From positions 9,114,001 to 9,178,000 of the forward strand of contig OZ004613.1 in the NCBI GenBank assembly GCA_963924565.1: a stretch of 64,000 nt of DNA, read 5' to 3'. The translations under genes and the position numbers were made by a program. Below, piece after piece: positions 32,772 to 62,348 of this stretch; the first letter of the stretch is position 1, and every line of letters starts with the position of its first letter. The stretch is from Ascidiella aspersa (taxonomy: Eukaryota). The notes below the pieces were generated by a model. It made no database searches. It saw only the letters and a list, made by a program, of their open reading frames with translations, and was not told where the DNA came from.

Positions 32772-33264
32772 TTGGCTTTGCATGATCGTATAAACCCACT
32801 GACGTGTTTTGATTGTTGAAAACAAAGCACACCTTGGTAATTGAAAGGCTCTTAAATTAACGGTCCAAACATCGCCGTCACAACACATTTTATTTTTCAG
32901 TTAAAAATTGCTTAAGTTTATGTATAAAAATTAAAGGCTCCTAAAACTTGGCATAACCCAGCTGATTCAGGACTAATTTTTACCAAACAGAGCAGCAAAT
33001 CAAATTATGGTTGCAAACAACATTCGCGTATGCGACATTTCTAATCCACAAAATACAGTATAAGTGAAACTGCTCAGACGAAAATCTATATCTGTAGAAA
33101 TCAGTAAATAAGTTTTAGTAGCAAAATTAAAAAAAAATCAATAGTTGAAATTTCTAAATTATTTGTTTTGCTATGATTCGAAATGCTGTTTGTGTAAGAA
33201 GGGGTATTTGGAAAACCCTAGATATATATTTTCTAGTCTATACATTTAAAAATCATTGTACAAA

Positions 33265-36600: not shown

Positions 36601-37386
36601 CGATACAACTTAAGCAGAAAAAGTGGTCAATACAATGGAATCCTCTCCGGAATTTAGTTATGACAATTTTAGCCAAACGACGCAATAAAACTAACCATAC
36701 GGGCGCTGCCACACCCTGACTTATTAAACAAAGCTTACGGCCCCTTACTGCTTTGTTCAGTCCATTGTTTGTTATTTGCGGTATTTTGTTGGTAATAGAT
36801 TTGTTGTTTTATCAACTGAAAGCGTATTGCCGCAAAGTCACGGATACAGCGTTTTGCTTTCGAGACCAATGCGCTTAACAGTGGAAGGTTGCTATGTAAA
36901 GCTCTTACAAATTACGACATTTTGCACCTGTTATCACACGTCCAGTATTGACACTGCAATAATTTAATCAACCTAAAGCGAAGCGAACCTATAAAGGCAT
37001 GCAATTGACTATCTAAGAAAAAACGCTATTCAAAACCACACATCACTGAACGGTAATTCGCTTATTAAGCCGCTATAGTTGTTTGAAGGGTAAGGTAAGT
37101 ACTTATCCTAAAATTAGAACACCACCTCGCACGTTATAATGCGATTTGGACAATATTTGAATGGTTCAAATTGTCCTATAGAAACGCCAGATTAGGATTT
37201 AAACACTCTCTGGAATCAATACGTTTTTAATTTAACAACCCCAAAGCTTATTTGCTTTGTTATAGTTAGCTGAGAGCCTACGTAAGGGCGCCACAAGCCA
37301 TAAACGAATGAGAAGCAATGTACAATTTAAAGTACGCGAAGACATTTAAGCGACTTGGATTTGGCAAATAGGTGACGCAAGGAGTA
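33647..37386. repeat. Local low-copy repeat family: copies at about 33647-34030, 34822-35530 and 36878-37270 (a fourth at 53340-53730)
   Basis: Shared blocks gagaaaacgattaggtcgagttaag, cctacggttgac.ttgagtaacctcaa, gcgtaattcgtccctcaga, ctaagaaaa.cgctattcaaa and gattaggat..aaacact. Confidence 0.85.
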
Positions 37387-39159
37387 ATGTACAATCCAGA
37401 AATAACGACGTTTTAGGCCCTCGCTGTATGTGGTTTGGCTTGCCAGTTCTGGCCCCGACTCTTAAACAAACATGCAACGAGCGCCGCGAAAATCTTCGTC
37501 CTACTGTTTCATATTAGATTACTCATACCGCACGATCGCGCCTGTCTAGGCTGGCTACTTAGTCGTGCATAAACATTTCGAATGACCTTTTGATTTTTTA
37601 GTTACCATCTTAACAATAATATGATTAGGACATTTTGGCTTTGAATAGACAGCATCGCTTAACAATGGAACCATAACTTTTCCAAATGAATTTAAACTTG
37701 ACGAATTGAAATTACTTTAGCAAAGTTTTCAAACAAGCTAAGCCACATATTAAATGACAGCCGAAGAATTAAAAGCGGCCCAGAAATGAGTGGAGCCCAG
37801 CATCGACTTGTTATCGGGGCAAGCAACCGTTCGGGACTTTTGCGGGGTGTATTTAACCTGATCTACACGGCGTGCAAGGTAATGAACAACGCCCAAATTA
37901 TTGTCAACGCCTCAGTGCCCACAAACATGATTTCCAGACGGACTTCAATGCCGAAAGAACAGCAACAATAAAAGTTATGTAAACTAAAAAACGAAATGAT
38001 CAAAATCGTTAGTTGCAAAATAACAAGACGGTTCCTTATAAGTTTTCCCCGTTCCCGTTTAAACAAGAAAAGTCCGGTGCTTTTACAAATTGGACACATT
38101 TCGTCTTTTATGTTTTTATTTATATTTGCGGATGGAAACAATTGCCGGGTTCGTTTACTAGTTAAGACCACAATGGAGATTTATTGATGACCGGTAGTTC
38201 CTATATGCGAGATGTGGTATAGTTTAGGGTAGGAATTAGGAAATTTATCGATTGCGTTTGACTGTTGCAATTACATCACTAGTAGGTTTTGAGGTTCGGT
38301 CTTGCGCACGTAACCGGCTTCTACAACTATTAACGTTTAACCCATTGTTTGATCTTTGTTGCACTCTGTAGGCAATGAATTTGTTTTTTACCAACTCAAA
38401 CAACTTAAGCGGGTTGTCGCAAAATCACGGGTTGCGTTTACGCAAATGCGTTCCTAAGAAACGTAAAGTTAAATGCCTTACGGAAAAGTGGAACCATGAC
38501 TTTACGACAAAAACACACTGATTGTCCGCAAATTGACTCGCGGGCCAGTGGGCAGTGGGCTAAAAAAACACTGGGCTAAACAATGCATCAAGGACAATGG
38601 CGTGAAATGCAAGTGTGCTTTGACGGTTGCGGAATTTGAACCCCATAAAATAGCTTCCGTAAACAGTAACCGGATAGGAGACTGTTGACATGTTAAATAG
38701 TGTTTCCAGAGAAGGGGCGGATACATCAGGCTAAAAGGGCTTGCGAATCAGGCTTGCGAATTACGGAAAAATTGCGTCAACCAGATGATTCGCTCCTTGA
38801 CGAATATTGTAAAATTTAATGTATCTAGTGTGTTTTTTTACGATCGCGGATTTTGAACCTCATGAAACTGTTTACGCTAACAGTAATCGGAGAGACTGTT
38901 AAATAGTGTTAGCGCATCCAGGGCGGATCCAGGGGCAACGTGGCCATACTGTCCCCAAGCTGCATTCTTTGCCTATTTTACCTACGAAAATGAAATAATG
39001 TTTTGTTCTCCGCGTTTTCTGTTTCATACATTTCTTGGCACGTTTTGATAAAATCGTTTCAGTCCAAAGGTGCGCGAATCGATGTAGCATATGTATTGAA
39101 GGTCCTATAACGAACCTACAACGTAATAAACGTTAACAAAATAAACGAATGCCTGATGT

Positions 39160-39420: not shown

Positions 39421-41241
39421 GTTCGAAAGTTACTTCGTTGTGACGTCTTCTCAGATTATTTTTTAAATTTTTTGGTCGCCAAAGCTTCACTGTTGTACTT
39501 AGGCTTAGTATTTGGGTCACCGAGTAAAAAGGTTTAGAAAGACTGGTGTAGCTAACCAGAAGAATAGCGTCACTTGCAATTCTTTCGTTGCGCTGCTAAA
39601 AACCTGGGTATTTCGCTACAAGAACGGTGAGTATCCGACAGTGGTGTGTAAATCACACCAAGGATTCCAAACAACGAATCATCTGCCGGCGTTGCCATGG
39701 TTAAGAGGTTGTACGGCCGCCCATGTGCCGTGTGCATTCCGCGAAAGTGTTGTGTGCCGCGTGCAGAGCGTATCGTACAACAAAGCGTTGTCGCAATCGT
39801 TTCTTGTGTGTCCAATGCAGAATGCGTCGTGTACGATTACAATATAGCCTCACTTATTGTTGAGTATATTTAAACGGAAAGAATGTGCGAGTCAGTAACA
39901 CAGCGCCTTTGCACTCGGCACTAGTCAGCAAAATTCGCGACCACAAAATCAGCACACACAAAACTTTTTCGTCCTGCACATGACGGGGGTCTTTAACCGG
40001 ATCCCCGTGGGGTGGTGTCCTGCCAGTGTTTTCTAACGATAAAGTACGAAAGCTCTTAACGTTTACAGGCGGTTACAAATCGGTTCTTGTCTGCGCATTG
40101 TTCGTCGAATGCCCAGGCAGACGCACAGTAGGATAACATTCAATAGGCTAAAATCGTCACACCGTGTGACAAAATAGCGCTCCCGGCTCGCTGTCGCTTT
40201 GTTAATGCCAGAATCGGAAATCATTCATTTGCCCGGTGCTGTAAGTCGTTGTGTGTCGGTCGGCTCGATTCGGATAACTGTGACGCATTTTCCGCAAGTT
40301 TTGCTGCGACACCTTAGCCTTATTGATCTTGTATAACTGTACTTTATAGAAAAAAAAAACGCTCTTCGACTTAATTTCGTGTACTGTACACGAAAGGTAT
40401 AACTTTGAAAGGGCGGCGCCCACACTTTGATGAATTACTATAATGTATTCAACCTTTCTGTTTACAATAAATCCTGTAGGGATTTTCCAGGCAACTGAGA
40501 GAAAACATGCAAAAATTATTGCAGACTAGAACGTTCGATAGACCAGAAAAACCGCCCAAAAAACAAAAAAAACAGCAATGATCTGGGCCGGAGTGGCTTG
40601 GTAACGTAACATGCCACGGCAAACAAGGAAATAAAAGCATAAGGTAATGCTCGAGGTGTAATTTGAGTCGTCATGTAAACCATTTGACGCGCGTAACTCT
40701 TCATCAAAGTAGAACCCCAAGGTGCCGATCCGCCATTTCGCATTGCACACATCTCGACACGCATTGAAGAACAATACGCGAGAACGTCATTAGAACGTCG
40801 GCACGGGCCGATTTCGTTTTAATTTGACAAGGCGCAAGAAGACGCTCATATCCTTGTCAAGGTTTCCTATAGATAGTTGGTGCCTTTTTTCGTTTTTTTT
40901 TCGGCTTGTTCGGTTTACTGCGAGGTGTTTTTCGTTAGTTGTACAGCGGCAGCCTCACGTGATAAATCTGTAGTCATACAATATAGGGAAAGGCAATTAC
41001 AGCCTTTTGTGCTTATCATGACATTGAAAAGAGGTGGAATGCTATATATATACTGCTCATTAAATATTCTGTTGCTACCAGGCATAGTATATTTAAAATA
41101 GGTTCTTCTGGCATATATTTCTTTAATCAACGTTTCGGCTTACTATCCGGCAAGCCTTCGTCAGGGACTAACACACAAAGCCAACAGGGCGCAAAGTAAA
41201 ATCACACAAAGAAAAAAGGAGATAAAAATGTGCGAGACGCG

Positions 41242-41349
41242 TTCAAAATACAAAGCGATAAAACAACGTTCAAAATAGAAAGCGATAAGACAACGTTCAA
41301 AATAGAAAGCGATAAAACAACGTTCAAAATAGAAAGCGATAAAACAACG
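41242..41349. repeat. 27-bp minisatellite, 4 copies (TTCAAAATAGAAAGCGATAAAACAACG)
   Basis: Directly visible; explains the repetitive ORF 41161-41352. Confidence 0.95.
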
Positions 41350-43979: not shown

Positions 43980-44130
43980 TTTGGAATGCCCAACAGAATG
44001 TCTAGATTAAAAATACGTCTAAAGTGGGCTTTGGAATGCCCTGCAAAATGTATAGATTGAATATACGTCCATCGGGGGCTTTGGAATGCCCAACAAAATG
44101 CATAGATTAAAAATACGTCTAAAGGGGACT
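43980..44130. repeat. 50-bp minisatellite, 3 copies
   Basis: ttggaatgccc...tagatt.aa.atacgtc recurs at 43981, 44031 and 44081. Confidence 0.93.
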
Positions 44131-44699
44131 AAGGTACCCCCATTCTATCTCCCCTTCCATAGATTTAAAGCAAACAGAGCAATTCAAATAAGGGCAGGAT
44201 TTGGAATGATTAATTAGTCGCAGCCTGGTTGACAAGGGTTTTCCTGCAATCCAAACTGGCCTGTTTATTACGCTGAATTATCTTTTGCTTTGAGCTCTAC
44301 GAGCCTTACACTTTATACTTTTGCATTGAGTTCTACGTGCAAAAAACGCTTCGCTATTGCTTATTTTTTAAGCCAATCAAAGTGGAAAAAATCATTGTGT
44401 TAAAATGGACCTTAAAGCGCCTTCCACGATTTAATGAAGCATTAAGAATCAATCCGTTTTTGCATTTAACGCATTTTACTCTTAACTTAACGTGCTTTGT
44501 TGGACTCTCACGTTATATTTTTTGTTATTGCATTGAAATTGTTTTTACATTGTTAAGGTTAAGTATTGGCCTCCAGTGAGTATATTTCTTGGGAAGCGTG
44601 ACAACGCAATTTTCTTTTGCGCGAATTTTGCGCAACAGGAGCATAAATCAACAACAAAATGGCGGTATTATTGCCGCCGTGTCTTTTGCCGCAGTCCAA

Positions 44700-44925
44700 A
44701 GATTACGTGACGCCGGTTACGCGCGAAACCTGACAACCAACATGCGTCATACCCCTTTTTCCCCAAGCGCGCGAAGCTGATTGTTTGGACCGGCGTTGTC
44801 GGCATTTGGGCGCGCCTGCATTCGCGAAATGACGAGTAGTTAGCCCGACAGCACTGCACATCCCGTTGTGTAGAGATGTTTATGAAGTCGAAGAAAAAAT
44901 TTGAGGTAAGATTGCTTGGGCTGAA
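44700..44925 (+). promoter_or_regulatory. Promoter-like module A with first exon and splice donor (GT at 44906)
   Basis: tacgtgac..cgcgcgaaa, cgtcata.ccttttt, cggcattt, cagcactgca and aaatttgag|gtaagattgct, shared with modules B, C and D. Confidence 0.55.
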
Positions 44926-46318
44926 CGATTTTTAAAATAAAGTTTCTCGCCTAATCATAATGAGTGAATTCGCCGACAGCCGTAAAACGAATTGTAAAAA
45001 GGGAACAGAAATTACTCAAACAGTTAGCTTAAGGCCACATTTTTCTCTTTTTTCGACTTGTAGCAATTCGAATTGAGAAAATTTGTAGCAGTGCGAATTG
45101 AGAAAATACTTTAAGCGTTTGGTGTAATTGAGTGCTAGGTATTCTGAACTGAAATAAATTTACTGGAACAAATCGATTCTAGACACATTCAGGTTGATTT
45201 CAGTGCAACCTCTACGAGGCATGTAGTTTTCTCAGAGGCAATATTTCGTTATTTCTCGTAATGCACCGGCATTTATACCTCTATACACTTTTTACCACGC
45301 CAAATCTGCGTTTCGTCCAGCCAAGTTTTGCAGAGTGCTTCTATCTTTGGCCAGTTGAGAAATGTTAGAACTAAGTGCCAATGTTTAGTAGCTGCAAATT
45401 ACAAATCGTGCTAATGACTGTGTCTCGATATATAATGCAAAGTAATTAAATGATTACAGCTATCTTTTTAATTGAAAAGATTTTTTTTTTTTCAATTGTA
45501 ATTTAATGAAAGGGCGTATTTTTATGGAATCCAAACCATTGGCACAGGTTTCTGCTTGTCGATCACTGTTCCGCTGACGCGTATATTAACAAATAAAACT
45601 GAAAGTGTAATTCAATGACTGTCGCCAAATCTTTAATTACAATATAGGTTAAACTGTGAATTCTGAGTTGCGGAATATTACTACGAGCCACTATATTGCT
45701 TTCATCAATGCAATGTAAAGAGTCCTAGAGGCGGCTTATTGCCACGTGGCAGGCTTGCCTTGACTAGCCTGTTTGCTGGGTTGGAAAACAACCTCCGCTC
45801 TGTGTGTCGTGTTTACGATGGCACTGCGGCTAAGGCTGTTTAGGGGGCCATTTAGCAGTTATACACTGTATAACTCACTCAAAGATGGTTCAAAGGCCTA
45901 AACAATTTGAACGATTTTTCTCAGGCCGCATCCTAGCATTGCGCAACTATTGTGTCTTGTATACGATTCGTTTACAGCAGTCGAAAGTGAGATTGCGCCG
46001 ATTTAAGAGTAAATGGAACCTATACGTTCGAAGAAGTGCATACTAGGAATATTTAATTGCTAACGAAAGCAAGTTTAAATTTGAAGATAAAGCAAAAAAA
46101 TGTTATTGGACGGCGGCCGCATTAAAAGTTAGCGCGGGCCTGCTGCATTCTGTCTGCCAATCCATCTCCCCAGCTGTTTTCCTGGTGATTGTTTTTGCGT
46201 GCCGCATGACGCAGCAGAAAAAAATCAGCTGGCGTCGCAGCGAATGTTTTGGCGGTGGTTGCTCGGATCGAGTATTTTCTAATCCCGTTCGAAAGATTTC
46301 ACATCCCAATATCTAGAG

Positions 46319-46908
46319 CAGTGGTGGGCAATTGTTTTAAAAGCGGGCCAAATAAAAAACTATGTCCTGGAGTGTCGTGTAAAAAAGGGGATCTCCAATA
46401 CACGTAATACAACGAGTAATTTATTTTAAGAATTTTTAAATATCGTTGTCTTGGCAAGCTGGTAAGAGTAGGAACAGGTGTGGATGTCTTCAAGAGTAAT
46501 CTATTCAATAAAATATTCTGAAAATGCTGAGCCTTATTTTTGCCTAAGAAGTTTCAGAGCCGTGATCCGGATTATATTGCTTGGCGGACCAGATCCAGCT
46601 CGCGGGCCTTAGTTTGCCCAGGTTTGATCGAGATTCTAGACCAGGGGGTGGGCAACATGTTTTTGACAATGGGCCACGTCCAGAGAAAGGGGATTTGAAA
46701 TGCACACAACTTAGAGTGTGAATCCAAAGATATAGCTATAAACTTTTTAGTTTTGACAAGATGGTAAGAGCAGAAACAAGTGAGGATACTTTGCATGTAA
46801 AATTCATTCAATAAAATATTTCAAAATTAAAAAAATAACCTAAAGGCATGTTTCTATTAATAGAGTTCTATAAAAAGTAAGCCGCGGGCCATAGTTTGCC
46901 CAAGCCTG
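46319..46908 (+). mobile_element. Two adjacent related hAT/Charlie-like MITEs (46319-46626 and 46642-46908); both duplicated at about 53775-54362
   Basis: TIRs CAG.GG(G)TGGGCAA ... TTGCCCA.G..TG; 8-bp TSD ttctagac/gtctagac for the second; internal similarity between the two. Confidence 0.85.
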
Positions 46909-47724
46909 GTCTAGACCTTCGCCAAAATAATTAATAGTTTAGGCTTTAAGGATAGTGTAAGGGTTATTACTACCATACATTCATGTTGCAATCGCTAACT
47001 AATTTTTCTAATGTTATTTCTAAAAGCAGCACGGTTAAAGCACGCTATCGGCGCCTTACACTTTATAGGTTAAGCCTAAACAATAGCTCGCCTTTCGCGA
47101 TGTTTCTAGAGGAAGTACACAGTCTGGTCTGCCTTTTCACAGCTACATTGTGCAGAACTAACAATTAAAAAATTTTTTTGAATAGTGTAGTAAATTGGTT
47201 TTGTTGTCAACACTTCAGGGCGAACTTAATTTAATCCTTTGGCGAAATAAAGATTAACAAACTCCGCAGGGAAAAGGCGTGTAATCTGGTGAACATCCTT
47301 CGGTCAACTCTACCCAAAACTTTTAATATGTGTGCGTAATAATTCAAGCAAACACTCAATAAAACAGATTGCCGCTTCCGCACACTCGGCGGCAAATAGT
47401 TTTCTAAATTTCACTTCATCTTGATGACAGACAGTGGTACGCGGTAAAGCCATACTTGCCCTGGTTTTGCAAATAAACTCACCGTGTGTCAACAATGCTC
47501 GAAATATAGCGGCTCCATAAGTCAAACCAAAAAAAGCGGTTGGGTGTAAGTGATTTGGTTTAAAAAAAAATCCAAAGAGGTTAAAAAAAACGCCTAAATT
47601 TTAAAAGTTGGCTTTAAAAAATCCTAACTGGCAACCCTGTATTCGCTTGCGTTTGTTATGTTGTTTTTTTTCTCTGAACTCCACGTGTTCCGTCAGCTTT
47701 TTACCGTTGAATGGATTTAAAAAA

Positions 47725-48040
47725 GGCTACGTGATCCAAGATAGGAGCGAAAGTCACAAACGAGAGAACAGCGGCCGGTGTACGACTGTACAGTGTACGG
47801 ACAAGTGCCCTTTTTCCCAGAACGCAGGAAACGTGGGTGCAGGCAGCAAAAGCCGGGCAGTTTGTAGCGCGCGCGTTAGCGGTAGGGTCTGTCGATATAC
47901 AACCGTGCTGACTGCTGGATGACGGACTTGGGCGCAAAAGACGTGGATCGTAAGGGCGCTTACAGACGTGCAACCAGTTGCGTACTGAGGGTAAAGCAGA
48001 CGCAGAAAAATTAAGGTAACGTTGCTAAACTTAAAGTTTT
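47725..48040 (+). promoter_or_regulatory. Promoter-like module B with splice donor (GT at 48016)
   Basis: tacgtga, ccctttttc, cgcgttagcg and cgcagaaaaattaag|gtaacgttgct. Confidence 0.5.
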
Positions 48041-49929
48041 AGGATATAGAGTTTCAGAAATCCTGCACCAGTCGTTTACAGTGTTGGAACAAGGGAAGGT
48101 CAAACGCGCAAACAAACTGAAAAATCTAACCATTTTTTTTCTTAAAACGAACTGTATCAGTGCGAATAAGTAAAACACGATTTAAAGTACGTTGACTTAT
48201 AAATATCGACAGTGTCCGGCTGAGCAATATAAATTGAAAAGAAATTGCTTTTACTTTAAGTAATAGGGTTGAGTCTGATTTGTTTTATGTAATATAAAGC
48301 AATTAGAATTTAGATGAAAGCTCGCTATCAGTACCTACTTAATTGGTTGCGACACACAAGGTTACATTTTGATGAATTGTTTTTTTAAAGAGCATCGGGG
48401 TTGGGGGGGGGGGGTTCTTGTTCAAAAGCTGAAATCTTACAACTAAGAAATAATAACTTAAAGAAAAGCTGCTTTGTTGTTATAACTTTGGAGAAAATAA
48501 AGCGCAGTAGAATCCGGTAGGAAAAGGCGTGTTATCTCGTAAATACCACTTAACGTAACCCAACACCCTTAATATGTGTGCACAGTAATCCACACAATCC
48601 CTCAATAAATACGCCTCCGTCCGTTGGCTTGTTCGCAGCAAACAGGTTAATATGTTTTACGTCTGCTTTTATCAATAAAAATGGATTGGTTTTTCTCTGT
48701 AAGGTAATCAACGACGACCAAAATCGATAGTGTACAAGTTTACTGCACTGTAAAGTTAGTGCATTAAACCTACAGCTTTTTTGTACAATTGAAAATGCAC
48801 CTGCATGCTCGATATGCTATTTGCGAAAACTTGATTAAGCAACCAGAATAAACAATTATTGCAAGTGTCTCGTAGTTAAACAAGCTCTTACGAAAATAGG
48901 CAGATGTGCTGAGAAATAAATTTCATTTAGTTTAGTTAAAAAAATAAACTGACAAAAACGAATAGACTTTACAGCTTATAAAGTTTGTCAGTAAACCGTT
49001 TTTTGTTTTTGTTTAAATCTCCTACAGAATTTGCTAAACGATGTTTTCCATACTCTGGACACATCTTATTGGTGGCATTACACGTATTTTTCTAAAAATA
49101 AAGAGAGGTAATTGGTGTATCTGTATCACATTACAGACATGCGTAATAATTCTCCTTTTATAATCTAGTAAAGATTAAAAACTGCGCGCGTCTAAAAGTA
49201 ACGCACACACGCTGCACGTGTCTAACGGTACCGACCGGAAATCGCAAAAATCCTTTTATGGGGATGAAATGCCGATCGCCGCTAATTGATTAACTGTTTT
49301 GTCGCCAGTTATGGGACCAAACTTCGATCAATGTCGAGAACAGTTTAAACATCATCCGACCGGATAATAAGCGAAGCATGGAAGACAGAAAACTGGAATT
49401 GGAATCTGAATCCTCTAACAAGAAAAGCGAGAGGTATGAAATGGATTATATCCTAAAGCATAAGCCTCTCGTAAAACTGAAGGGCTTTAATCGTCTAGTG
49501 TGCGAAGCAAATTAAAGACTCAATTTCGTATTATAGCTACGTTTCGTTTAAACATTTCTTCAGGTACAGACGTTACAGTGATGAAAACATCTAAAGGGGA
49601 CAAAATACCCCCAAACCTCCTTCTTTTTGATTCCGAAACCAAACAGCCCTTATTTTGCGGGAAATTTGCTTTTGCTGAAAGTAGGCTCACCTGTTCAAAC
49701 CGCTAAATCATTATATTCTTTTAGTGAGTAAACCGCAACTTTATTCTTATTTTTTGAAAGGAATGCAAAGTAAAACAAGCTTTTTGTTTAATTGGAATCG
49801 TCAAGCAAAATTACTAAACCAAGCGGTGGTCTTAATCAATTTACTTGTTTAATTGTATTTTCTGGTATTTTACTCATGACTTCATTTTCTCGTTAGGTCT
49901 CTAACGTTTGTTTGCATTCGCTTAAGAAG

Positions 49930-50160
49930 TGATTGAGTAACGCGCATAATGTCAAAAGATAACAGCTAGAACTTCCTTTTTACGACAGCGCGCGAGGCTA
50001 GCGCTGCGTCGGCGGCATTTCGTCGTGGCTGCGTTATTTATAGAACCGTCTGGATTATTATATAGCCGAACGCCGTTTACTAGTTCAAACAGCACAGCTG
50101 AAAAGCTAGTCGAAGTGAAATTAAGGTAAAATTGCTGAAGAGTTTTTTGGCGAGCATAAA
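49930..50160 (+). promoter_or_regulatory. Promoter-like module D with splice donor (GT at 50126); copy D' at about 56262-56490 has GC at 56458
   Basis: agtaacgcgc, ccttttt, cggcatttcgtc, TATA-like tracts and gaaattaag|gtaaaattgct. Confidence 0.5.
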
Positions 50161-52019
50161 AGCTTGATTTTATCTGCAGCCAGTTGCGAGGTTGCAATAA
50201 GCTAGGAGAAAAAGCGAAAGCCAACAGTGAGTTCAAGGTAACCGTTTCTTATTGCATAAAAATTTTATCACTGTGAATTGAGAAAATTACTATTTATATT
50301 TCAAAGACTTGAAAATCACGCCACTTTAGCTACTAACTCGGTGTTCTGCAGAGCCATGTGTAGACTGTAACCCAAAAGAAATTTTACTGAAATAAATCGG
50401 GAGTCAGATTATTGCCAATTTTAGCTGAAGCCTGTAATCTTTGTGAAAAATAAAGAGGTTTCGTTCACAGTAGTGGCATATTATAATATGAATTGCCCGC
50501 GCTGGGAATTTAACTTTTTAGCTTGCGCTGTCGGCAATGCTACTGTCTGCTTACATATCTGGTCCATAAGTTTCCTTAAAACTAAGCGATTAGAGAAAAT
50601 CAGCTGGCGTCAACGAAGACGTATTGGCCGTGATTGTTTTTGCATTTGTCTGCATTTTTTATCCAGTATTTCATAAGCCAGCACTCATACGATGCCTAAA
50701 CCAAATGGTTGTGAGAGCAAAGGTGAAGTCGAGATCGACGGACATTGCTATATTTCCAAGTGCGTTAAATCGACAGAACAAAGCGTGCTATCTGTAGCCC
50801 ACTCAATTTCTTACTTTACGCGCGGAAGGCAATGAATACGCCTGGTGTTTTTAGTATACCATGTGTCAACGAAAATCGATAGGTGTAAGGACACGTGCCG
50901 AAACTTTCCCTATTTTAATCTAGTTGGCACAATCTGCTGACAACAGAAACTACCGGTACCGAAAAAAGCTTTACTGGGGTCAGATTCCCGATCGGTGCCC
51001 ACTATATCAGGCCCGCGTCAATTCAGGGATGAATTAAACTGCAACATGCCTGACAAAAGAAATGGTAATAACAAGGCTAGAGTTTCTGACCCTAAACCTT
51101 CAACAATGTGGCGCGTGGTACGGCACATCAACGGTCCTTTGAAAACCGTTTTATGCTCCCTTTGGCGTTGAAGACAAACGCTGGTATAACAACCTTGCGT
51201 AATGTGTAGCTTTGTGCAATAACGGAACGCGGAACAGTTATATATGCCCTGGCTATATCGGCATAGGGCTAATAAACTTACCGTTTGAAAGCAATGCTCA
51301 AATATAGCGGCCCCACACGTCTACAGTAATAAAAAAACTAAGTGGCGGCATTCTGGTAGATTTATAGCTGTGGTTTAAATAAGAAAACGGCCCGAAAACA
51401 ATCAGCATTTGCCTACCGTTGCGTTGACCCGGTGGTGGCATTCTAACAAAGGGTAGTATGCCCGACGAATTTTAACTGTCTTCATCGATATATCTCACGC
51501 AAGTATCAAAACACTTGGTTATGGAATTTATCCAAAAAGCTCACCAAACGTTACCCTTTAAAAACACTTAACACTGCAACCTTTTCGTTTGTATTAGGCA
51601 TCAGAATACTCAAGTTTACTACAAAGTTTGCAGGGGCTAAGGTTTCCCAACCCCCGCATAGATTCTAAAAGCAGAACACGCGATTTTTATACGGGATGAT
51701 TTGATAGATTAATTTGTTATATCCCGGTTGACAAGCGTTAAACGACTTGTTCCGAAGTCTGATTTAAACTTAGACATCCTGTTTATTTCTCTGAATCCTG
51801 AAAAGCTTTTAGGTTTATGTGGTTTATCGAAAAACGCGTCTTTATTTTTGTTTTATTTTATGAAGCTCAAACAGAATCTTTAAATACTTTATAACGAATT
51901 TAATGGTAAATCGACATTTTTCAATCGGTTTGTGTTGTTGCATGTTTAATCGGTGTTTTACTTTGGACTTAACGTGCTTAGTCATTGTTTTCACTTGTGA
52001 TTGAGTTCACAAACAAGAC

Positions 52020-52270
52020 TATACGTGACTCACTAACGCGCGAAAAAAAACACGTCATAACCTTTTTCTCGTACGCGTTACTATATATAGCTGCGGAACG
52101 TCGCATCCCGGCATTTCGTCACAAGCGCTTCAGCGTAAGGACCGCCGATTTTTGCTTTGTAAAGTCGAGGACTTCAGTGAAAACAGCCGCAACTGCAGCA
52201 CTGCATTCTGCTGTGTGTAGATGGAAACGCATCCGCAGAAAAATTAAGGTAAGCTTGCTTGAGCTGAAAG
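52020..52270 (+). promoter_or_regulatory. Promoter-like module C with splice donor (GT at 52249); copy C' at about 58398-58685 (GT at 58662)
   Basis: tacgtgac..cgcgcgaaa, acgtcata, TATATATA at 52082, cggcatttcgtc and cgcagaaaaattaag|gtaagcttgct. Confidence 0.55.
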
Positions 52271-53339
52271 TTGTCCAGTATAGAGTTCTTTGCCGAGCAA
52301 ACGCACCGAAAGTCGTTAGCGTGTTGCAGCAAGGGAACTGAAAGCCGCGATGTTTTTGGCGGCGGCTCGCGTTCGGTTTTCCCGCCAAGCTTTCCGATAT
52401 GTCACGTTGGTCTATTGATATGTTGCCTGGTGAAGCTAACTCTATTTTTAAGCCCAAGAAATGTTGTGACAAAATACAACTTGTGACTAATCTATGGTGG
52501 GTCGTTTGATCGACCGACCTGTAAAATAATAAGCTTCCTTATTTACGTTTGGATTGAGCAACGTTGCATAAAACCTGTCGCGCCTTCTCGCTTTTAATTG
52601 CAAATTTACAGGCGGCAAAATTTCACTGGAAATTACGATTTGACTGACGTTTGTGCGTAAGCGTTTTTACTTAAATTGCTTCAAAATGTGAAAATTTGCT
52701 TGTTATAAAGGTACACACCAGTACACGCCCAACGCTGTTTTCATAAGAACCTCTCTTGTTACATTGACCGTATAATTTATCTGCAGACACGGCAGCACCG
52801 AATTCTAAAGGTTTGTGCGAATTGAGATTTTGCATTCGGACAAATTTCATTCCAGATTTTGTTTTACGCGATTTTTTTATATTACGACGAATTTCTTTTA
52901 ACAAGTTCAAAGGAAAGCCAAAGATGGTGTTGTCGTAAGAGCTGCTTTAAATTGTTAGTGTGGCTTTGACTTAAGATAGGCGTTATATTCTACAGGCAAT
53001 GGTCTGGCGCGCCTCATACGTCACGGGTGCCACGTGGCAGCTGAAGGCTAGCCTGGTCGGTTGGCTCGACCTGGTGGAAAAGGGCGCTCACATGCACCAA
53101 ATAAACCGTTCGCAAAGTTTTTGTTATTCACAGTGGCGCATTTCGGTTTTGCGTTGTGTTGTTTTGGAAATACTTGGAACAATTTCGTGTAGCTGATGCC
53201 CTTGTTGGACTTTACAGGCGTTGCCGACTCTTGTCTGCTCATTTACTTGTGTCTGTTGCAGTGATGCAATAATCCTTGCGGTGGCTTCATGGCACAATAT
53301 ATTTTTGGTACGCGTACCACAGTTTGGGAACCGCTGCTC

Positions 53340-56300
53340 TAAAGGCATGTATTTGACTATCTAAGAAAAAACGCTATTCAAAACCACACATCACTGAACG
53401 GTAATTCGCTTATTAGGCCGCTATAGTTGTTTGAAGGGTAAGGTAAGTACTTATCCTAAAATTATAACACCCACCTCGCACGTTATAATGCGAACAAAAT
53501 TTCAATGGTTTAAATTATCCTATACAAACGCTTGATTAGGATTCAAACACTCTCTGGACTCAATACTTATTCAATTTAACAACCCTAAAGCTTATTTGCT
53601 ATGTTATAGTTAGCTGAGAGCCTACGTAAGGGCGCCACAAGCCATAAACGAATGAGAAGCAATGTACAATTTAAAGTACGCGAAGACATTTAAGCGACTT
53701 GGATTTGGCAAATAGGTGACGCAAGGAGTATTTTCTAATCCCGTTCGAAAGATTTCACATCCCAATATCTAGAGCAGTGGTGGGCAATTGTTTTTAAAGC
53801 GGGCCAAATAAAAAAATATGTCTTGGAGTGTCGTGTAAAAAAGGGGATCTCGAATACACGTAATACAACGAGTGATTTATTTTAAGAATTTTTAAATATC
53901 CTTGTCTTGGCAAGCTGGTAAGAGTAGGAACAGGTGAGGATGCCTTCAAGAGTAATCAATTCAATAAAATATTCTGAAAATGCTAAGCCCTTTGTTTGCC
54001 TAAAAAGTTTCAGAGCCGTGATCCGGATTATATTGCTTGACGGACCAGATCCGGCTCGCGGGCCTTATTTTGCCCAGGTTTGATCGAGATTCTAGACCAG
54101 GGGGTGGGCAACATTTTTTTGACAATGGGCCACGTCCAGAGAAAGGGGATTTGAAATGCACACAACTTAGAGTGTGAATCCAAAGATATAGCTATAAACT
54201 TTTTAGTTTTGACAAGATGGTGAGCAGAAACAAGTGAGGATACTTTGCATGTAAAATTCATTCAATAAAATATTTCAAAATTAAAAAAATAACGTACAGG
54301 CATGTTTCTATTAATAGAGTTCTATAAAAAGTAAGCCGCGGGCCATAGTTTGCCCAAGCCTGGTCTAGACCTTCGCCAAAATAATTAATAGTTTAGGCTT
54401 TAAGGATAGTGTAAGGGTTATTACTACCATACATTCATGTTGCAATCGCTAATTAATTTTTCTACTGTTATTTTTAAAAGCAGCACGGTTAAAGCATGCT
54501 ATCGGCGCCTTACACTTTATAGGTTAAGCCTAAACAATAGCTCGCCTTTTGCGATGTTTCTAGAGGAAGTACACAGTCTGGTCTGCCTTTTCACAACTAT
54601 ATTGTGCAGTAACTAACAATTAAAAAAAATTTGGAATAGTGTAGTAAATTGGTTTTGTTGCCAGCACTGCAGGGCGAACTTAATTTAATCCTTTGGCGAA
54701 ATAAAGATTAACAAACTCCGCAGGGAAAAGGGGGGGGTCTTGTATAAAAGCTGAAATCTTACAATTAAGAAATAATAACTTAAAGAAAAGCTGCTTTGTT
54801 GTTATAACTTTGGAGAAAATAAAGCGCAGTAGAATCCAGTAGGAAAAGGCGTGTTATCTCGTAAATACCACTTAACGTAACCCAACACCCTTAATATGTG
54901 TGCACAGTAATCCACACAATCCCTCAATAAATACGCCTCCGTCCGTTGGCTTGTTCGCAGCAAACAGGTTAATATGTTTTACGTCTGCTTTTATAAATAA
55001 AGATGGATTGGTTTTTCTCTGTAAGGTAATCAACGACGACCAAAATCGACAGCGTACAAGTTTAATGCACTGTAAAGTTAGTGCATTAAACCTACAGCTT
55101 TTTTGTACAATTGAAAATGCACCTGCATACTCGATATGCTATTTGCGAAAACTTGATTAAGCAACCAGAATAAACAATTATTGCAAGTGTCTCGTAGTTA
55201 AACAAGCTCTTACGAAAATAGGCAGATGTGCTGAGAAATAAATTTCATTTAGTTTAGTTAAAAAAATAAACTGACAAAAACGAATAGACTTTACAGCTTA
55301 TAAAGTTTGTCAGTAAACCGTTTTTTGTTTTTGTTTAAATCTCCCACAGAATTTGCTAAACGATGTTTTTCATACTCTGGACACATCTTCTTGGTGGCAT
55401 TACACGTATTTTTCTAAAAATAAAGAGAGGTAATTGGTGTATCTGTATCACATTACAGATAGGGAATGGTCCGGACATGCGTAATAATTCTCCTTTTATA
55501 ATCTAGTAAAGATTAAAAACTGCGCGCGTCTAAAAGTAACGCACACACGCTGCACGTGTCTAACGGCACCGACCGGAAATCGCAAAAATCCTTTTATGGG
55601 GATGAAATGCCGATCGCCGCTAATTGATTAACTGTTTTGTCGCCAGTTATGGGACCAAACTTCGATCAATGTCGAGAACAGTTTAAACATCATCCGACCG
55701 GATAATAAGCGAAGCATGGAAGACAGAAAACTGGAATTGGAATCTGAATCCTCTAACAAGAAAAGCGAGAGGTATGAAATGGATTATATCCTAAAGCATA
55801 AGCCTCTCGTAAAACTGAAGGGCTTTAATCGTCTAGTGTGCGAAGCAAATTAAAGACTCAATTTCGTATTATAGCTACGTTTCGTTTAAACATTTCTTCA
55901 GGTACAGACGTTACAGTGATGAAAACATCTAAAGGGGACACAAAATACCCCCAAACCTCCTTTTTGATTCCGAAACCAAACAGCCCCTATTTTGCGGGAA
56001 ATTTCGCTTTTGCTGAAAGTAGCCTCGCCTGTTCAAACCGCTAAATCATTATATTTTTTACTGTGTAAACCGCAACTTTATTCTTATTTTGAAAAGAATG
56101 CAAAGTAAAACAAGTCTCAATAATTGGAATCGTCAAGCAAAACTACTAAACCAAGCGGTGGTCTTAATCAATTCACTTGTTTAATTGTATTTTCTGGTAT
56201 TTTACTCATGACTTCATTTTCTCGTTAGGTCTCTAACGTTTGTTTGCATTCGCTTAAGAAGTGATTTAGTAACGCGCATAATGTCAAAAGATAACAGCTA

Positions 56301-59300
56301 GAACTTCCTTTTTACGACAGCGCGCGAGGCTAGCGCTGCGTCGGCGGCATTTCGTCGTGGCTGCGTTATTTATAGAACCGTCTGGATTATTATATAGCCG
56401 AACGCCGTTTACTAGTTCAAACAGCACAGCTGAAAAGCTAGTCGAAGTGAAATTAAGGCAAAATTGCTGAAGAGTTTTTTGGCGAGCATAAAAGCTTGAT
56501 TTTATCTGCAGCCAGTTGCGAGGTTGCAATAAGCTAGGAGAAAAAGCGAAAGCCAACAGTGAGTTCAAGGTAACCGTTTCTTATTGCATGAAAATTTTAT
56601 CACTGCGAATTGAGAAAATTACTATTTATATCTGAAAGACTTGAAAATCACGCCACTTAAGCTACTAACTCGGTGTTCTGCAGAGCCATGTGTAGACTGT
56701 AACCCAAAAGAAATTTTACTGAAATAAATCGGGAGTCAGATTATTGCCAATTTTAGTTGAAGCCTGTAATCTTTGTGAAAAATAAAGAGGTTTCGTTCAC
56801 AGTAGTGGAATATTATAATATGAATTGCCCGCGCTGGGAATTTAACTTTTTAGCTTGCGCTGTCGGCAATGCTACTGTCTGCTTACATATCTGGTCCATA
56901 AGTTTCCTTAAAACTAAGCGATTAGAGAAAATCAGCTGGCGTCAACGCAGACGTATTGACCGTGATTGTTTTTGCATGTGTCTGCATTTGTTATCCAGTA
57001 TTTCATAAGCCAGTACTCATACGATGCCTAAACCAAATGTTCGTGAGAGCAAAGGTAAAGTCGAGATCGACGGACATTGCTATATTTTCAAGTGCGTTAA
57101 GTCGACAGAACAAAGCGTGCTATCTGTAGCCCACTCAATTTCTTACGCTCAATACATGATCGCCTTGTTTTATTTAACTTTACGCGCGGAAGGCAATGAA
57201 TACGCCTGGTGTTTTTAGTATACCATGTGTCAAATCACGAAAATCGATAGGTGTAAGGACACGTGCCGAAACTTTCCCTATTTTAATCTAGTTGACACAA
57301 TCTGCTGACAACAGGAACTACCGGTACCGAAAAAAGCTTTACTGGGGTCAGATTACCGATCGGTGCCCACTATATCAGGCCCGCGTCCATTCAGGGATGA
57401 GTTAAATCGGCAACATGCCTGACAAAAGAAAAGGTAATCACAAGGCTAGAGTTTCTGACCCTAACCTTCAACAATGTGGCGCGTGGTACGGCACATCAAC
57501 GGTCCTTTGAAAACACTTTCAAATCTTTTTATGCTCTCTTTGGCGTTGAAGACAAACGCTGGTATAACAACCTTGCGTAATGTGTAGCTTTGTGCAATAA
57601 CGGAACGCGGAACAGTTATATATGCCCTGGCTATATTTGCATAGGGCAAATAAACTTACCGTTTGAAAGCAATGCTCAAATATAGCGGCCCCACACGTCT
57701 ACAGTAATAAAAAAACTAAGTGGCGGCATTCTGGTAGATTTATAGCTGTGATTTAAATGAGAAAAAGGCCCGAAAACAATCAGCATTTGCCTACCGTTGC
57801 GTTGACCCGGTGGTGGCATTCTAACAAAGGGTAGTATGCCCGACGAATTTTAACTGTCTTCATCGATATATCTCACGCAAGTATCAAAACACTTGGCTAT
57901 GGAATTTATCCAAAAAGCTCACCAAACGTTACCCTTTAAAAACGCTTAACACTGCAACCTTTTCGTTTGTATTAGGCATCAGAATACTCAAGTTTACTAC
58001 AAAGTTTGCAGGGGCTAAGGTTTCCCCACCCCCGCATAGATTCTAAAAGCAGAACACGCGATTTTTATACGGGATGATTTGATAGATTAATTTGTTATAT
58101 CCCGGTTGACAAGCGTTAAACGACTTGTTCCGAAATCCGACTTAAACTTAGACATCCTGTTTATTTCTCTGAATCCTGAAAAGCTTTTAGGTGTATGTGG
58201 TTTACCGAAAAACGCGTCTTTATTTTTGTTTTATTTTATGAAGCTCAAACAGAATCTTTAAATACTTTATAACGAATTTAATGGTAAATCGACATTTTTC
58301 AATCGGTTTGTGTTGTTGCATGTTTAATCGGTGTTTTACTTTGGACTTAACGTGCTTAGTCAGGGTTTTCACTTGTGATTGAATTCACAAACAAGACTAT
58401 ACGTGACTCAGTAACGCGCGAAACTTCAAAACAAGGGAACACCGGGCGAGCACAGCACGCGTCATAACCTTTTTCTCGTACGCGTTCGCGTTACTGGATA
58501 TAGTTGCGGAACGTCGCACCCCGGCATTTCGTCACAAGCGCGTTAGCGTAAGGACCGCCGATTTTTGCTTTGTAAAGTCGAGGACTTCAGTGAAAACAGC
58601 CGCAACTGCAGCACTGCATTCTACTGTGTATAGATGGAAACGCATCCGCAGAAAAATTAAGGTAAGCTTGCTTGAGCTGAAAGTTGTCCAGTTTAGTTTC
58701 TCGCCAAGCAAATTTACCAAAAGTCGTTAGCGTGTTGCAGCAAGGGAACTAAAAGCCGCGATGTTTTTGGCGGCGGCTCGCGTTCGGTTTTCCCGCCAAG
58801 CTTTCCGATATGTCAGGTTGGTCTATTAATATGTTGCCTGGTGAAGCTAACTCATATTTTTAAGCCCAAGAAATGTTGTGACAAAATGCAACTTGTGACT
58901 AATCTATGGTGGGTCGTTTGATCGACCGACCTGTAAAATAATAAGCTTCCTTATTTACGTTTGGATTGAGCAACGTTGCATAAAACCTGTCGCGCCTTCT
59001 CGCTTTTAATTGCAAATTTACAGGCGGCAAAATTTCACTGGAAATTACGATTTGACTGACATTTGTGCGTAAGCGTTTTTACTTAAATTGCTTCAAAATG
59101 TGAAAATTTGCTTGTTATAAAGGTACACACCAGTACACGCCCAACGCTGTTTTCATAAGAACCTCTCTTGTTACATTGACCGTATAATTTATCTGCAGAC
59201 ACGGCAGCACCGAATTCTAAAGGTTTGTGCGAATTGAGATTTTGCATTCGGACAAATTTCATTCCAGATTTTGTTTTACGCGATTTTTTTATATTACGAC

Positions 59301-59717
59301 GAATTTCTTTTAACAAGTTCAAAGGAAAGCCAAAGATGGTGTTGTCGTAAGAGCTGCTTTAAATTGTTAGTGTGGCTTTGACTTATGATAGGCGTTATAT
59401 TCTACAGGCAATGGTCTGGCGCGCCTCATACGTCACGGGTGCCACGTGGCAGCTGAAGGCTAGCCTGGTCGGTTGGCTCGACCTGGTGGAAAAGGGCGCT
59501 CACATGCACCAAATAAACCGTTCGCAAAGTTTTTGTTATTCACAGTGGCGCATTTCGGTTTTGCGTTGTGTTGTTTTGGAAATACTTGGAACAATTTCGT
59601 GTAGCTGATGCCCTTGTTGGACTTTACAGGCGTTGCCGACTCTTGTCTGCTCATTTACTTGTGTCTGTTGCAGTGATGCAATAATCCTTGCGGTGGCTTC
59701 ATGGCACAATATATTTT
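53340..59717 (+). repeat. Recent direct segmental duplication, a mosaic of 36992-37386, 46270-47277 and about 48405-53306
   Basis: Near-identical sequence; several spurious ORFs recur almost verbatim (for example 52671 vs 59083, 49952 vs 56284). Confidence 0.97.
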
Positions 59718-62348
59718 GCATAATTTCGCGCGACTTTCGGGGTTTTGCGAATCCCTTTTAAACGATGACTAGCATTTTTTCATTTGAGATCTTTAAACAA
59801 TGGCGTTGGTGTCACGCGAGCGAGTTGGTTGAGTTATTAGATTTCCAACCTGGGTTCGGTAGACAAAAACAATCACTCGCCCGTCGTTATGTTGAAAGTT
59901 TAACGCGTTGCACTTCCGCGTGTAATTGAAAGGGAATTGACCGACGTTTTGCTGATTGAATGAATTAACGTCGACTCTGGATATCTCAGTGTTTTTTCGA
60001 TCAATAAACATGATTTGATAAATTATAGATTATTTAGTGTCATTCTTTGTACATTACACCAAAAGCACCTTAAGTCCTCCTTTACTGAAAAAAGGTGACA
60101 GGAGATGGCGCTTGCGTACAACTGAACAATGCGCTTTGTGCAAATATATCTTGTACAAAAAAAAACGTATAAATAATCATGTGTCAAATAAGCAACAACG
60201 AATGTAGCGACATGCAGTGCAACAGCAAGTACATATTTATGTAAAACCAAGCAACAAACTTAAAACTGGTATTCCACGGATTAAAAGTTTGCGAGGGCCG
60301 CATGCCGGGCAGTCCTTATATGGGATGCGCATTCATCTCTAGACTATTATTATCGTGTTATTATTGTCGTGCCGCATGACGCAATAGATCAGCTGGCGTC
60401 CATGCGGATGTATGGCGGTGTTTTGCTCGTATCCAGAATTTTGCAAGCTCATTCGAAATACGACGCCTAATTACAATGTCTGTAGCTTTGTTGTAATACA
60501 TATGTAGTCCAGGACAAGGGTTACACTCCCTATTTATTTTTGTGTTACTTTTGAAAGCAGTACGGCCAAATACAAGGTCCCCATGAAGTCTGGGCTATTA
60601 AGAGAAAATCGCGTGTTTATTTAGCTTGCAGCGCGAAAGAAAGGCATACGTCGTTAAGCCTTGGTTGATTTACTTCAAACCACAAACAAGCACGACTGTA
60701 CACAAAACTCATGCTGCGTGGGAACAAAATCGTAAAGTCGAAACCGAACCCGCAACCGATCTAAGGCAACAAGCAACAAGTGTTGACACGTGAAGGGTGG
60801 CGCCCTCAAATATTTCGAAAGCTGGCCCTTCTGCTTTCATGGGTAACCCGATAGCAAATGGATGAGCTGTTTTGGAGTTTAAATCACAAATGGATGAGCT
60901 TAAATTACAGCAAACCGTGAAACTCTTTGTTAGGGTTAAAGATAACATCAAATCCATAGGAACTATACACGGATGTAACTTGGCTGCTAATAACATGGGA
61001 GTCAGATTCAAATTTGCCTGGGAAGAGGGGGCTTTAAACAGCATACCTTTTATTTTCTGTTTTTTTAGGTTTTTATTTTTAATTTTAGGTTGTCATATTG
61101 ACTCACTTGCATTGTAAGCTTGGTGTGCACTTTTTTGTGTGTGGTAACTGTTAATTTATTATTGGTTTCCTTTGTTTAATTTGCTTTGCTTCACTGCACT
61201 TCAAACAGTAACAAGAAAAACTTATAGCTTAAGTGCAAAACTAATCGCAGATGTACAGGTAGGAAAAGGCGTAGAAGCTGTTTTATCCGAATTTACCCGA
61301 AACCCCGTGATGTGTTTGCGCAGTAACCCACGCCAACACTCAATAAATACAGGCCGCCGCCGCCGCCCATTGCTTGGCAAACAGTTTAATGAGTTTTGCT
61401 TCCGCTTAATGTTGAGAATATTTTCTAAGGGAATTGAAAACGAACAATGTCATGTAATTTAAATAAACAATGTATCATATTGTGCAAAACATAATTATAA
61501 CTTTTTGTTGTGTTAAAAAAGCCATCTCTAGCCAGCAAATGGTGTTTGTTGGCACGAAAATACGAATTTTTCAAAATCACACGTGACTTGACTTATTAGG
61601 CGTCGCAACTTGGCATTTTTTCACAACAGACCGACGAACCGCGTTGGCGATACCTTTGTGAGATCTACTGCGCATTGTCGGTGATGAATCGATAGTTAGC
61701 CGCGCGCTTCTGAGAGTTAAGTTAGCTTTAGGTTAATTCCAGTAATAAGTCGGTAATCTTTGTTAAAGAATTCCAACTGACTTAATCTGTGTGCCGTCGA
61801 CAAAGCTCAGCGTAAACTCATATTTGTCTTGCTGAATTGTTTAGCTAAACGTAGAGTTCTTTTCTGGGAAAGTAGTAGTGCAGGGTTTATCGTGCGAGAT
61901 GTTTGAGGCTATGTGCATTATTTTGCTATTGTGGTCAATTGGGCGGAGGCTTGCTTGCCACTTGGTACAAGAAAGCTTGTTTGTCCAGTTAACTGGGGGT
62001 TGCGACATACTAACAGGTCGGACTCGCGAACAAAAGTAACGTTTTAAGAGGGTTATATGAATACCAGCGGCGTTTCTCAACCAGTAGGTCGTAATTTGTT
62101 TTATTAAGCTATTTAAATTTTGATGCAATGTTGATAAACCTGTTGGAACGCACATTTTATTTTGTTTAGGTAATTTTGCTATGATTTTTTTTCGCTTTTT
62201 TTTCGTATTCCACAAGCGCTGCCAGTTTGGCAATAGAATTAAAATTCATTTGTTATTTGTTATAACTGTTTCTCGTCAAACATTTTTGTCCGCTCAATAA
62301 AAACAAAAAGGCTGTTGTTGAAAGTGAGTCGCGGCGTTGAGACTCTAG

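Follow-up and report, generated by a model that had tools for sequence, protein, structure and literature searches.

The host IAP gene and its BIR1-splitting intron

We analyzed a 64,000-nt stretch of the Ascidiella aspersa genome (assembly GCA_963924565.1, contig OZ004613.1, positions 9,114,001 to 9,178,000 of the forward strand), hereafter the window, which contained a tandem array of paralogous cassettes with promoter-like motifs, a predicted non-coding leader exon, and a splice-donor context. The whole array was located inside one 43.7-kb intron of an IAP gene, antisense to this host gene, and this nested antisense position is the main new result of the analysis. Positions follow the window numbering, and those called extended run the same numbering on past the window end, into the next 30 kb of the contig. 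A slash within a motif marks a splice boundary.

The host gene was recognized from a 193-residue open piece on the minus strand, 7.8 kb past the window end, which had one relative in a library of 1.84 billion proteins, the 757-aa ZF(RING)-14 of Phallusia mammillata with three BIR domains. Mapping of ZF(RING)-14 onto the window and its flanks gave one IAP gene on the minus strand. Its N-terminal exon (homologue aa 159-289, 36% identity) was found at extended 72228-71827, followed by the first half of BIR1 (BIR1a) at extended 67113-66937 (90% identity), where the exon ends with TTTAG/GTAAGT. The second half (BIR1b) was found at 23229-23110 (78% identity), preceded by the acceptor ttttacag/C. BIR2 (18571-18380, 78% identity), BIR3 (16558-16394 and 15463-15365, 78% and 45% identity), and further small exons (22356-22439, 21218-21310, 19783-19857, 19424-19510, and 17712-17849) were mapped from the homologue on the same strand. 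The intron splitting BIR1 thus runs from 23230 to about 66934, its donor and acceptor are intact, and the phases of BIR1a and BIR1b match to give F-S-C-G-L-C, as in the homologue.

The same intron measured approximately 0.5, 0.9, 1.3, 5.2, and 10.7 kb in five paralogues elsewhere in the genome (contig C7). Neither the cassette nor the conserved blocks X and Y described below were found in the equivalent introns of three paralogues or in one whole neighbouring paralogue. The cassette array, local duplications, and inserted elements account for the growth of the intron in the host gene. IAP/BIR paralogues were many and clustered (C7, 29.87-29.99, 30.69-30.74, and 9.055-9.059 Mb; C5, 22.42-22.48 Mb; C3, 1.52-1.56 Mb), and several matches carried stop codons; the family seems to be large, with frequent pseudogenes.

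Units of the array

The donor-context pattern AAWTTRAGGYAANNTTGCT had six plus-strand matches in the window, at 44906, 48016, 50126, 52249, 56458 (GC in place of GT), and 58662, against 0.01 expected from shuffled sequences. These are the six same-strand donor contexts listed by an earlier, sequence-only reading of the window, and all of them were recovered at coordinates marking the G of GT or GC. The consensus over the six units was AAWTTRAG/GYAANNTTGCT. When the pattern was applied to the whole 308-Mb genome, only these six sites and one on another contig, which is about the level of chance, were obtained.

Cassette A (44456-45011) contains ACGTGA, CGCGCGAAA, CCTTTTT, and GGCATTT (A at 44804), and has a predicted non-coding leader exon at 44804-44905, the donor GAG/GTAAGA at 44906, and approximately 100 nt of conserved intron start thereafter. 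Cassette B (47596-48104) carries the initiator-like GGCAGTT with its A at 47859, a predicted leader at 47859-48015, and the donor AAG/GTAACG at 48016. In cassette C (49733-50212), the predicted leader at 50017-50125 is followed by the donor AAG/GTAAAA at 50126. Cassette D (51844-52344) has TATATATA at 52082-52089, GGCATTT with its A at 52113, a predicted leader at 52113-52248, and the donor AAG/GTAAGC at 52249. Cassettes C' (56070-56544) and D' (58222-58755) are recent copies of C and D; the donor of C' is mutated to GC (AAG/GCAAAA at 56458), and the predicted leader of D' at 58526-58661 leads to the donor at 58662.

A possible seventh, decayed copy had been suggested at about 61580-61740, and we regard cassette F (61570-61740) as such a probable decayed member. 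It retains CACGTGAC, GGCATTT (A at 61615), and the GCGTTGGCG box, while TT at 61722-61723 stands in place of the donor GT. Cassette F was placed in the family by the order of its motifs, by eye, and obtained no score in searches with the cassette model or profiles.

The array runs past the window end, where two further units were identified. A copy of the segment from block Y to cassette F lies at extended 63990-64653 (79-85% identical); the F copy within it (extended 64493-64653) is 79% identical to F and has TTG/GTACGT, with the donor at about 64655. Unit E has the donor AAG/GTAAGT at extended ~65175 and matched the cassette model with an E-value of 5e-22. In total, the array consists of nine units in six old lineages (A, B, C, D, E, and F), which are 49-62% identical over the cassette core.

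Promoter-like anatomy and conservation islands

The order ACGTGA, CGCGCGAAA, CCTTTTT, GGCATTT was fixed, at similar distances, in every unit, which bears out the claim that short motifs shared upstream of the donors are separated by strongly diverged spacers. In the alignment of six units, divergence was not uniform, and conservation was confined to islands consisting of the ACGTGA box, CGCGCGAAA, CCTTTTT, GGCATTT, a GCGTTAGCG-like box, and the stretch from ~40 nt upstream to ~100 nt downstream of the donor, with the donor included. Such islands against an unalignable background argue for constraint, as had been proposed from the motifs at first sight, and speak against a transposon family.

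The consensus site of E2F is TTTSSCGC, and CGCGCGAAA is the reverse complement of TTTCGCGCG, a perfect match to it. It was perfect only in A, D, and D', that is, in two lineages, and 1-2 mismatches off in the other units. The E2F-type site named by the sequence-only reading is therefore exact in two lineages and approximate in the remaining ones. All nine units carry a GGCATTT-type motif (GGCAGTT in B and GACATTG in E) at 91-157 nt before the donor; it fits the initiator consensus BBCABW, in which the A is position +1. In unit D, TATATATA forms a TATA box at positions -31 to -24, counted from the initiator-like A at 52113, and D' also has a TATA box at -31. The CpG observed/expected ratio reached peaks of 1.5-1.9 on the cassettes versus a locus median of 1.05, and donors of the AAG/GTAAG type were retained in five of the six old lineages. 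The natural reading of these motifs is a putative RNA polymerase II promoter followed by a non-coding leader exon of 91-157 nt.

Recent duplication and turnover of the family

Self-comparison of the locus revealed a recent tandem duplication of approximately 7 kb on the plus strand (46270-59717), in which copy 1 spans 46270-53305 and copy 2 spans 53726-59717. Segments 46270-47277 and 48408-53305 match 53726-54731 and 54730-59717, respectively, with ~96% BLAST identity and 2.1% substitutions. Cassettes C' and D' are therefore young copies of C and D, so that the six cassettes first noted are indeed paralogous and on the same strand (plus) and do not represent six independent units. Copy 2 is devoid of 47278-48407, which contains cassette B, and the deletion junction lies within a poly-G run. 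The joint of the two copies holds a 0.4-kb segment whose only other occurrence is at 36980-37397, in the same intron; the end of a dispersed short element precedes this segment.

Between C and C', the change of GT to GC was the sole substitution from the start of the leader to 100 nt beyond the donor, and the 110-nt leader itself showed no changes. Cassette D was more diverged between the duplicates than its own flanks. With the 7-kb duplication, the deletion of B', and the loss of donors in C' and F, the pattern looks like birth-and-death evolution of a redundant family rather than strict constraint on each copy.

Downstream blocks X, Y, and Z

Three blocks, found by sensitive pairwise BLAST and profile searches, follow the cassettes in the collinear order cassette, X, Y, Z across units. 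Block X, a conserved non-coding block on the plus strand, was identified in units A (46118-46326), C (50480-50760), and D' (60220-60559), with copies from the recent duplication at 56809-57092 (C') and, in part, at 53726-53845. Block Y, also on the plus strand, was found in A (47237-47426), where it contains YAG/GAAAAGGCG and AATAAA, in B (48486-48668), in D' (61171-61499), in the window-end copy (63990 to past the window end), and in E (extended 65639-65858), with recent copies at 54640-54745 and 54762-55081. Units A, B, and D' all keep the AATAAA in their Y copies. Block Z of unit A (47436-47535) is 78% identical to that of unit C (51224-51334), and a recent copy lies at approximately 57602-57712; its plus strand reads AATAAA and its minus strand a consensus donor, ACG/GTRAGT.

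The cassette and these blocks reached 66-73% identity against an alignment background of 38%. In a global alignment of A with D', the median identity of 60-nt windows was 38%, and X and Y stood at 70-73%. Therefore, there has been constraint on the same blocks in several pairs of lineages.

In both Z copies, the minus strand, which is the sense strand of the host, has ~55 conserved nt followed by ACG/GTGAGT (~47480) or ACG/GTAAGT (~51279), and Z of unit A is located ~300 nt from the presumed start of cassette B. Z could represent a divergent minus-strand first exon, possibly belonging to an internal IAP promoter. Read from the ATG that Z of unit A contains, the frame would not match that of the BIR1b exon.

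A short element with inverted ends (TCTAGACCAG...GGGCAAC) was inserted in several units (46300-46920 and 54030-54370). In unit E, this element lies immediately 3' of the donor, and beyond the insertion comes a second donor-like copy, AAG/GTGAAATTGCTTG, which may result from a target-site duplication. Since parts of the units are insertions of the short inverted-repeat element, the ancestral unit was probably only ~1 kb long.

The arrangement of the blocks bears on the proposal of the sequence-only reading that the cassettes form a bank of alternative promoters and 5' exons for a common gene beyond the window. Under this explanation, the non-coding first exons would splice to one common downstream exon, belonging to a long antisense transcript over the 5' half of IAP or to a gene further on, and X and Y would be enhancers duplicated along with them. 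All units lie in one orientation as a tandem series, each with a donor context and none with a conserved acceptor, and in three cases Y lies 160-250 nt upstream of the following cassette, like an upstream element; these features would suit a common exon. The order cassette, X, Y with its conserved AATAAA suggests instead that each unit terminates by itself. Moreover, the next 7 kb downstream contain opposite-strand IAP exons (extended 66937-67113 and 71827-72228), and up to 28 kb past the array neither a coding exon on the plus strand nor a Pfam match was detected. Because the array is nested antisense in the IAP intron and the paralogue introns examined lack cassettes, a common gene beyond the window is unlikely, and so, in our view, is the common-exon explanation as a whole. 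A literature search on ascidian alternative first exons returned nothing relevant.

Locus specificity, coding potential, and RNA families

DNA searches with the cassette, Y, and Z/pre ('pre' being a block upstream of the cassettes A and D) revealed no copies in the genome outside the locus. A sequence-only covariance model of the cassette recovered the seven clear units, and no other hit fell below E = 0.3 among the 150 of ~37,000 first-look candidates that were scored. Together with the result of the pattern search, these results answer the earlier proposal of a genome-wide cassette search: the family is locus-specific and has no dispersed copies.

No coding body was found, in agreement with what had been noted first. 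Six-frame comparison of all units gave, between old paralogues, only matches in multiple frames or containing stops. Block X showed no shared open frame and no codon periodicity (mismatches of 11, 11, and 10 by codon position). A protein database search with the open reading frame (ORF) spanning cassette D found nothing similar. The idea that each unit is a small protein-coding gene, with a body of short exons or micro-exons missed by ORF scans, finds a foothold in unit A, in which an ATG near the exon end is in frame up to the donor. This ATG is not conserved, however: D has an in-frame stop before the donor, and B, C, and E have no ATG there. Furthermore, no conserved frame was found in X, Y, or elsewhere between old paralogues, and unit B has only ~0.6 kb from its donor to AATAAA, without an ORF. 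Small coding genes are thus a very improbable explanation.

Searches for structured RNA were likewise negative. There was no Rfam match at E<=1 over 40000-64000, the folds of X were no better than those of shuffled sequences (z-scores of -1.2 to +0.8), indicating that X is not a hairpin, and no consensus structure was obtained from the presumed start to +110 (alignment fold of -2.7 kcal/mol). On these grounds (the lack of an Rfam match and the fold values of X and of the alignment), a host array of snoRNAs or miRNAs was rejected.

A promoter, a leader, and a donor also recall the 5' end of a retroelement, and a donor without a coding body recalls the genes of spliced-leader (SL) RNAs; tunicates do trans-splice. 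We regard it as barely conceivable that the units are mobile element copies or SL RNA genes. The cassette, Y, and Z/pre occur nowhere else in the genome, the copies are strongly diverged, and the leaders are long and variable. No Sm-type site (RAU3-6GR) was found within 150 nt after any of eight donors, and nothing in the array resembled, with up to 4 mismatches, the 16-nt ascidian SL sequence.

Other features of the locus

Two plus-strand open pieces lie in the same IAP intron at 31132-31587 (152 aa) and 32472-32816 (115 aa). They are 85% identical over their common part, and neither a further genomic copy nor a Pfam match was found for them; they may represent a nested lineage-specific gene that was duplicated locally. 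Downstream of the IAP exons, open pieces resembling the integrase, reverse transcriptase, and protease of a long terminal repeat (LTR)-type retrotransposon were recognized by eye on the minus strand at 3722-6448. The segment 12001-14000, in the region of the IAP gene, is very AT-rich (GC 0.24), with a CpG observed/expected ratio of 0.07. Tandem repeats were found at 41240-41349 (27 bp x 4) and 43980-44127 (50 bp x 3); the 50-bp repeats fall within the 'pre' block that precedes cassette A, a block also present ahead of cassette D (51375-51739).

Candidate antisense transcription units

The explanation that we tentatively put first, at somewhat less than an even chance, is that the cassettes belong to self-contained antisense long non-coding RNA (lncRNA) units, with X and Y serving as the downstream exon and the poly(A) region. 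The locus would then hold non-coding transcription units of RNA polymerase II that form a lineage-specific family, expanded by tandem duplication and nested antisense in the BIR1-splitting intron of the IAP gene. Each unit would start with a CpG-rich promoter carrying the ACGTGA box, the E2F-like TTTCGCGCG, and the CCTTTTT box, and with transcription presumably beginning at the initiator-like GGCA(+1)TTT, assisted in D and D' by the TATA box. A leader exon of 91-157 nt without a conserved start codon would follow, ending at a consensus 5' splice site. X and Y would probably supply the downstream exon sequence and the poly(A) site, the latter through the AATAAA of Y, and each unit would be a self-contained lncRNA gene of 0.6-2.7 kb. 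The family would have turned over recently through the 7-kb duplication, the deletion of B', and the donor losses in C' and F. An lncRNA family antisense or divergent to the IAP gene had been among the first suggestions; the antisense arrangement fits, and the divergent one does not, as the array is nested in the 43.7-kb intron.

Several observations weigh against this explanation. The +5 position of the donor varies, while +7 to +11 (TTGCT, nearly invariant) and -8 to -4 (AAATT) are better conserved, and therefore the constraint is not simply one of U1 pairing. Comparison of the recent duplicates revealed no excess conservation in cassette D. Since one cassette was deleted (B') and two donors were lost (C' and F), individual copies are dispensable. 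No acceptor is conserved across units, the putative acceptor AG in Y has no pyrimidine tract, Y of unit E has CATAAA in place of AATAAA, and unit C has no Y.

Some of these points would be accounted for if the cassettes were not, or no longer, transcribed. They could be a duplicated cis-regulatory module, that is, a bank of enhancers or silencers for IAP, or decaying relics of a duplicated gene 5' end, and the GT could be part of a protein-binding motif or a leftover. The conservation of TTGCT and AAATT over the donor +5 and the losses among the copies are consistent with this possibility, as are words in X and Y that, by eye, resemble transcription factor sites (CAGCTG, TGACGCA, TAATCC, and TGTTTGC). 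In addition, paralogue introns do without the array, which is hence not needed for IAP function in general. Nevertheless, donors persist in five of the six old lineages at a steady distance from the initiator-like motif and, in D and D', from the TATA box, and relics would not retain the same islands amid unalignable surroundings. A regulatory bank or a set of relics is therefore rather unlikely, if still to be taken seriously.

A bolder extension of the lncRNA explanation, which we consider improbable on the present sequence evidence, is that an E2F/bHLH-type promoter bank fires spliced antisense RNAs toward the 5' half and promoter of IAP. Convergent transcription or antisense pairing would adjust the output of IAP, unequal crossing-over would alter the copy number, and the intron would have grown 4- to 80-fold over those of the paralogues to house the bank.

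Comparison with known systems

The array resembles the protocadherin alpha/gamma and UGT1A clusters in its tandem paralogous units of one orientation, each with promoter-like motifs (whose activity is presumed here), a first exon, and a donor. The first exons of those clusters are long, coding, and spliced to constant exons on the same strand, whereas here they are short and non-coding, no constant exon was found in 28 kb, and the array is antisense in the intron of another gene. Because no constant exons were found and the exons are non-coding, the array does not belong to the variable-first-exon clusters. The Snurf-Snrpn U exons, which are tandem paralogues themselves, and the exon-1 series of NR3C1 and BDNF also comprise several non-coding first exons, each with its own promoter; they splice in sense into a known downstream gene, whereas the sole downstream gene here lies on the other strand.

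SL RNA gene arrays of tunicates and other trans-splicing animals share with the units a promoter, a short non-coding exon, a donor, a tandem arrangement, and the lack of a coding body, but differ from these low-copy units with long and variable leaders, in which no Sm site, SL-like sequence, or Rfam match was found and whose old lineages diverge from one another by 38-51%. Host units of the SNORD115/116 type are similar in their tandem non-coding exons and introns with conserved intronic blocks; in the present units, by contrast, neither X and Y nor the intron starts matched a snoRNA or another Rfam family, each unit has promoter-like features of its own, and no acceptor is conserved.

The array also resembles intronic natural antisense lncRNA genes, as non-coding units bearing putative promoters lie in a host intron on the opposite strand and point to the 5' exons of the host. 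Such loci are usually single, whereas nine paralogous units of six old lineages share one intron here. The array is most suitably classed among candidate intronic antisense lncRNA genes, as a family specific to its lineage. What makes it interesting is that the promoter, leader, and donor islands are cleanly conserved and that it sits inside a cell-death regulator.

Implications

Whether or not the units are transcribed, a protocadherin-like bank feeding a hidden gene is unlikely. If they are not transcribed, the array would be a curiosity of intron growth. If they are, it would provide a clear example of a young, expanding non-coding gene family, antisense inside a cell-death control gene, in which promoters, leader exons, and donors were kept while all else decayed. 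Ascidian embryos can be electroporated with reporter constructs, and the family would then be a tractable system for the origin of lncRNA families by tandem duplication and for the possible regulation of host genes by antisense promoter banks.

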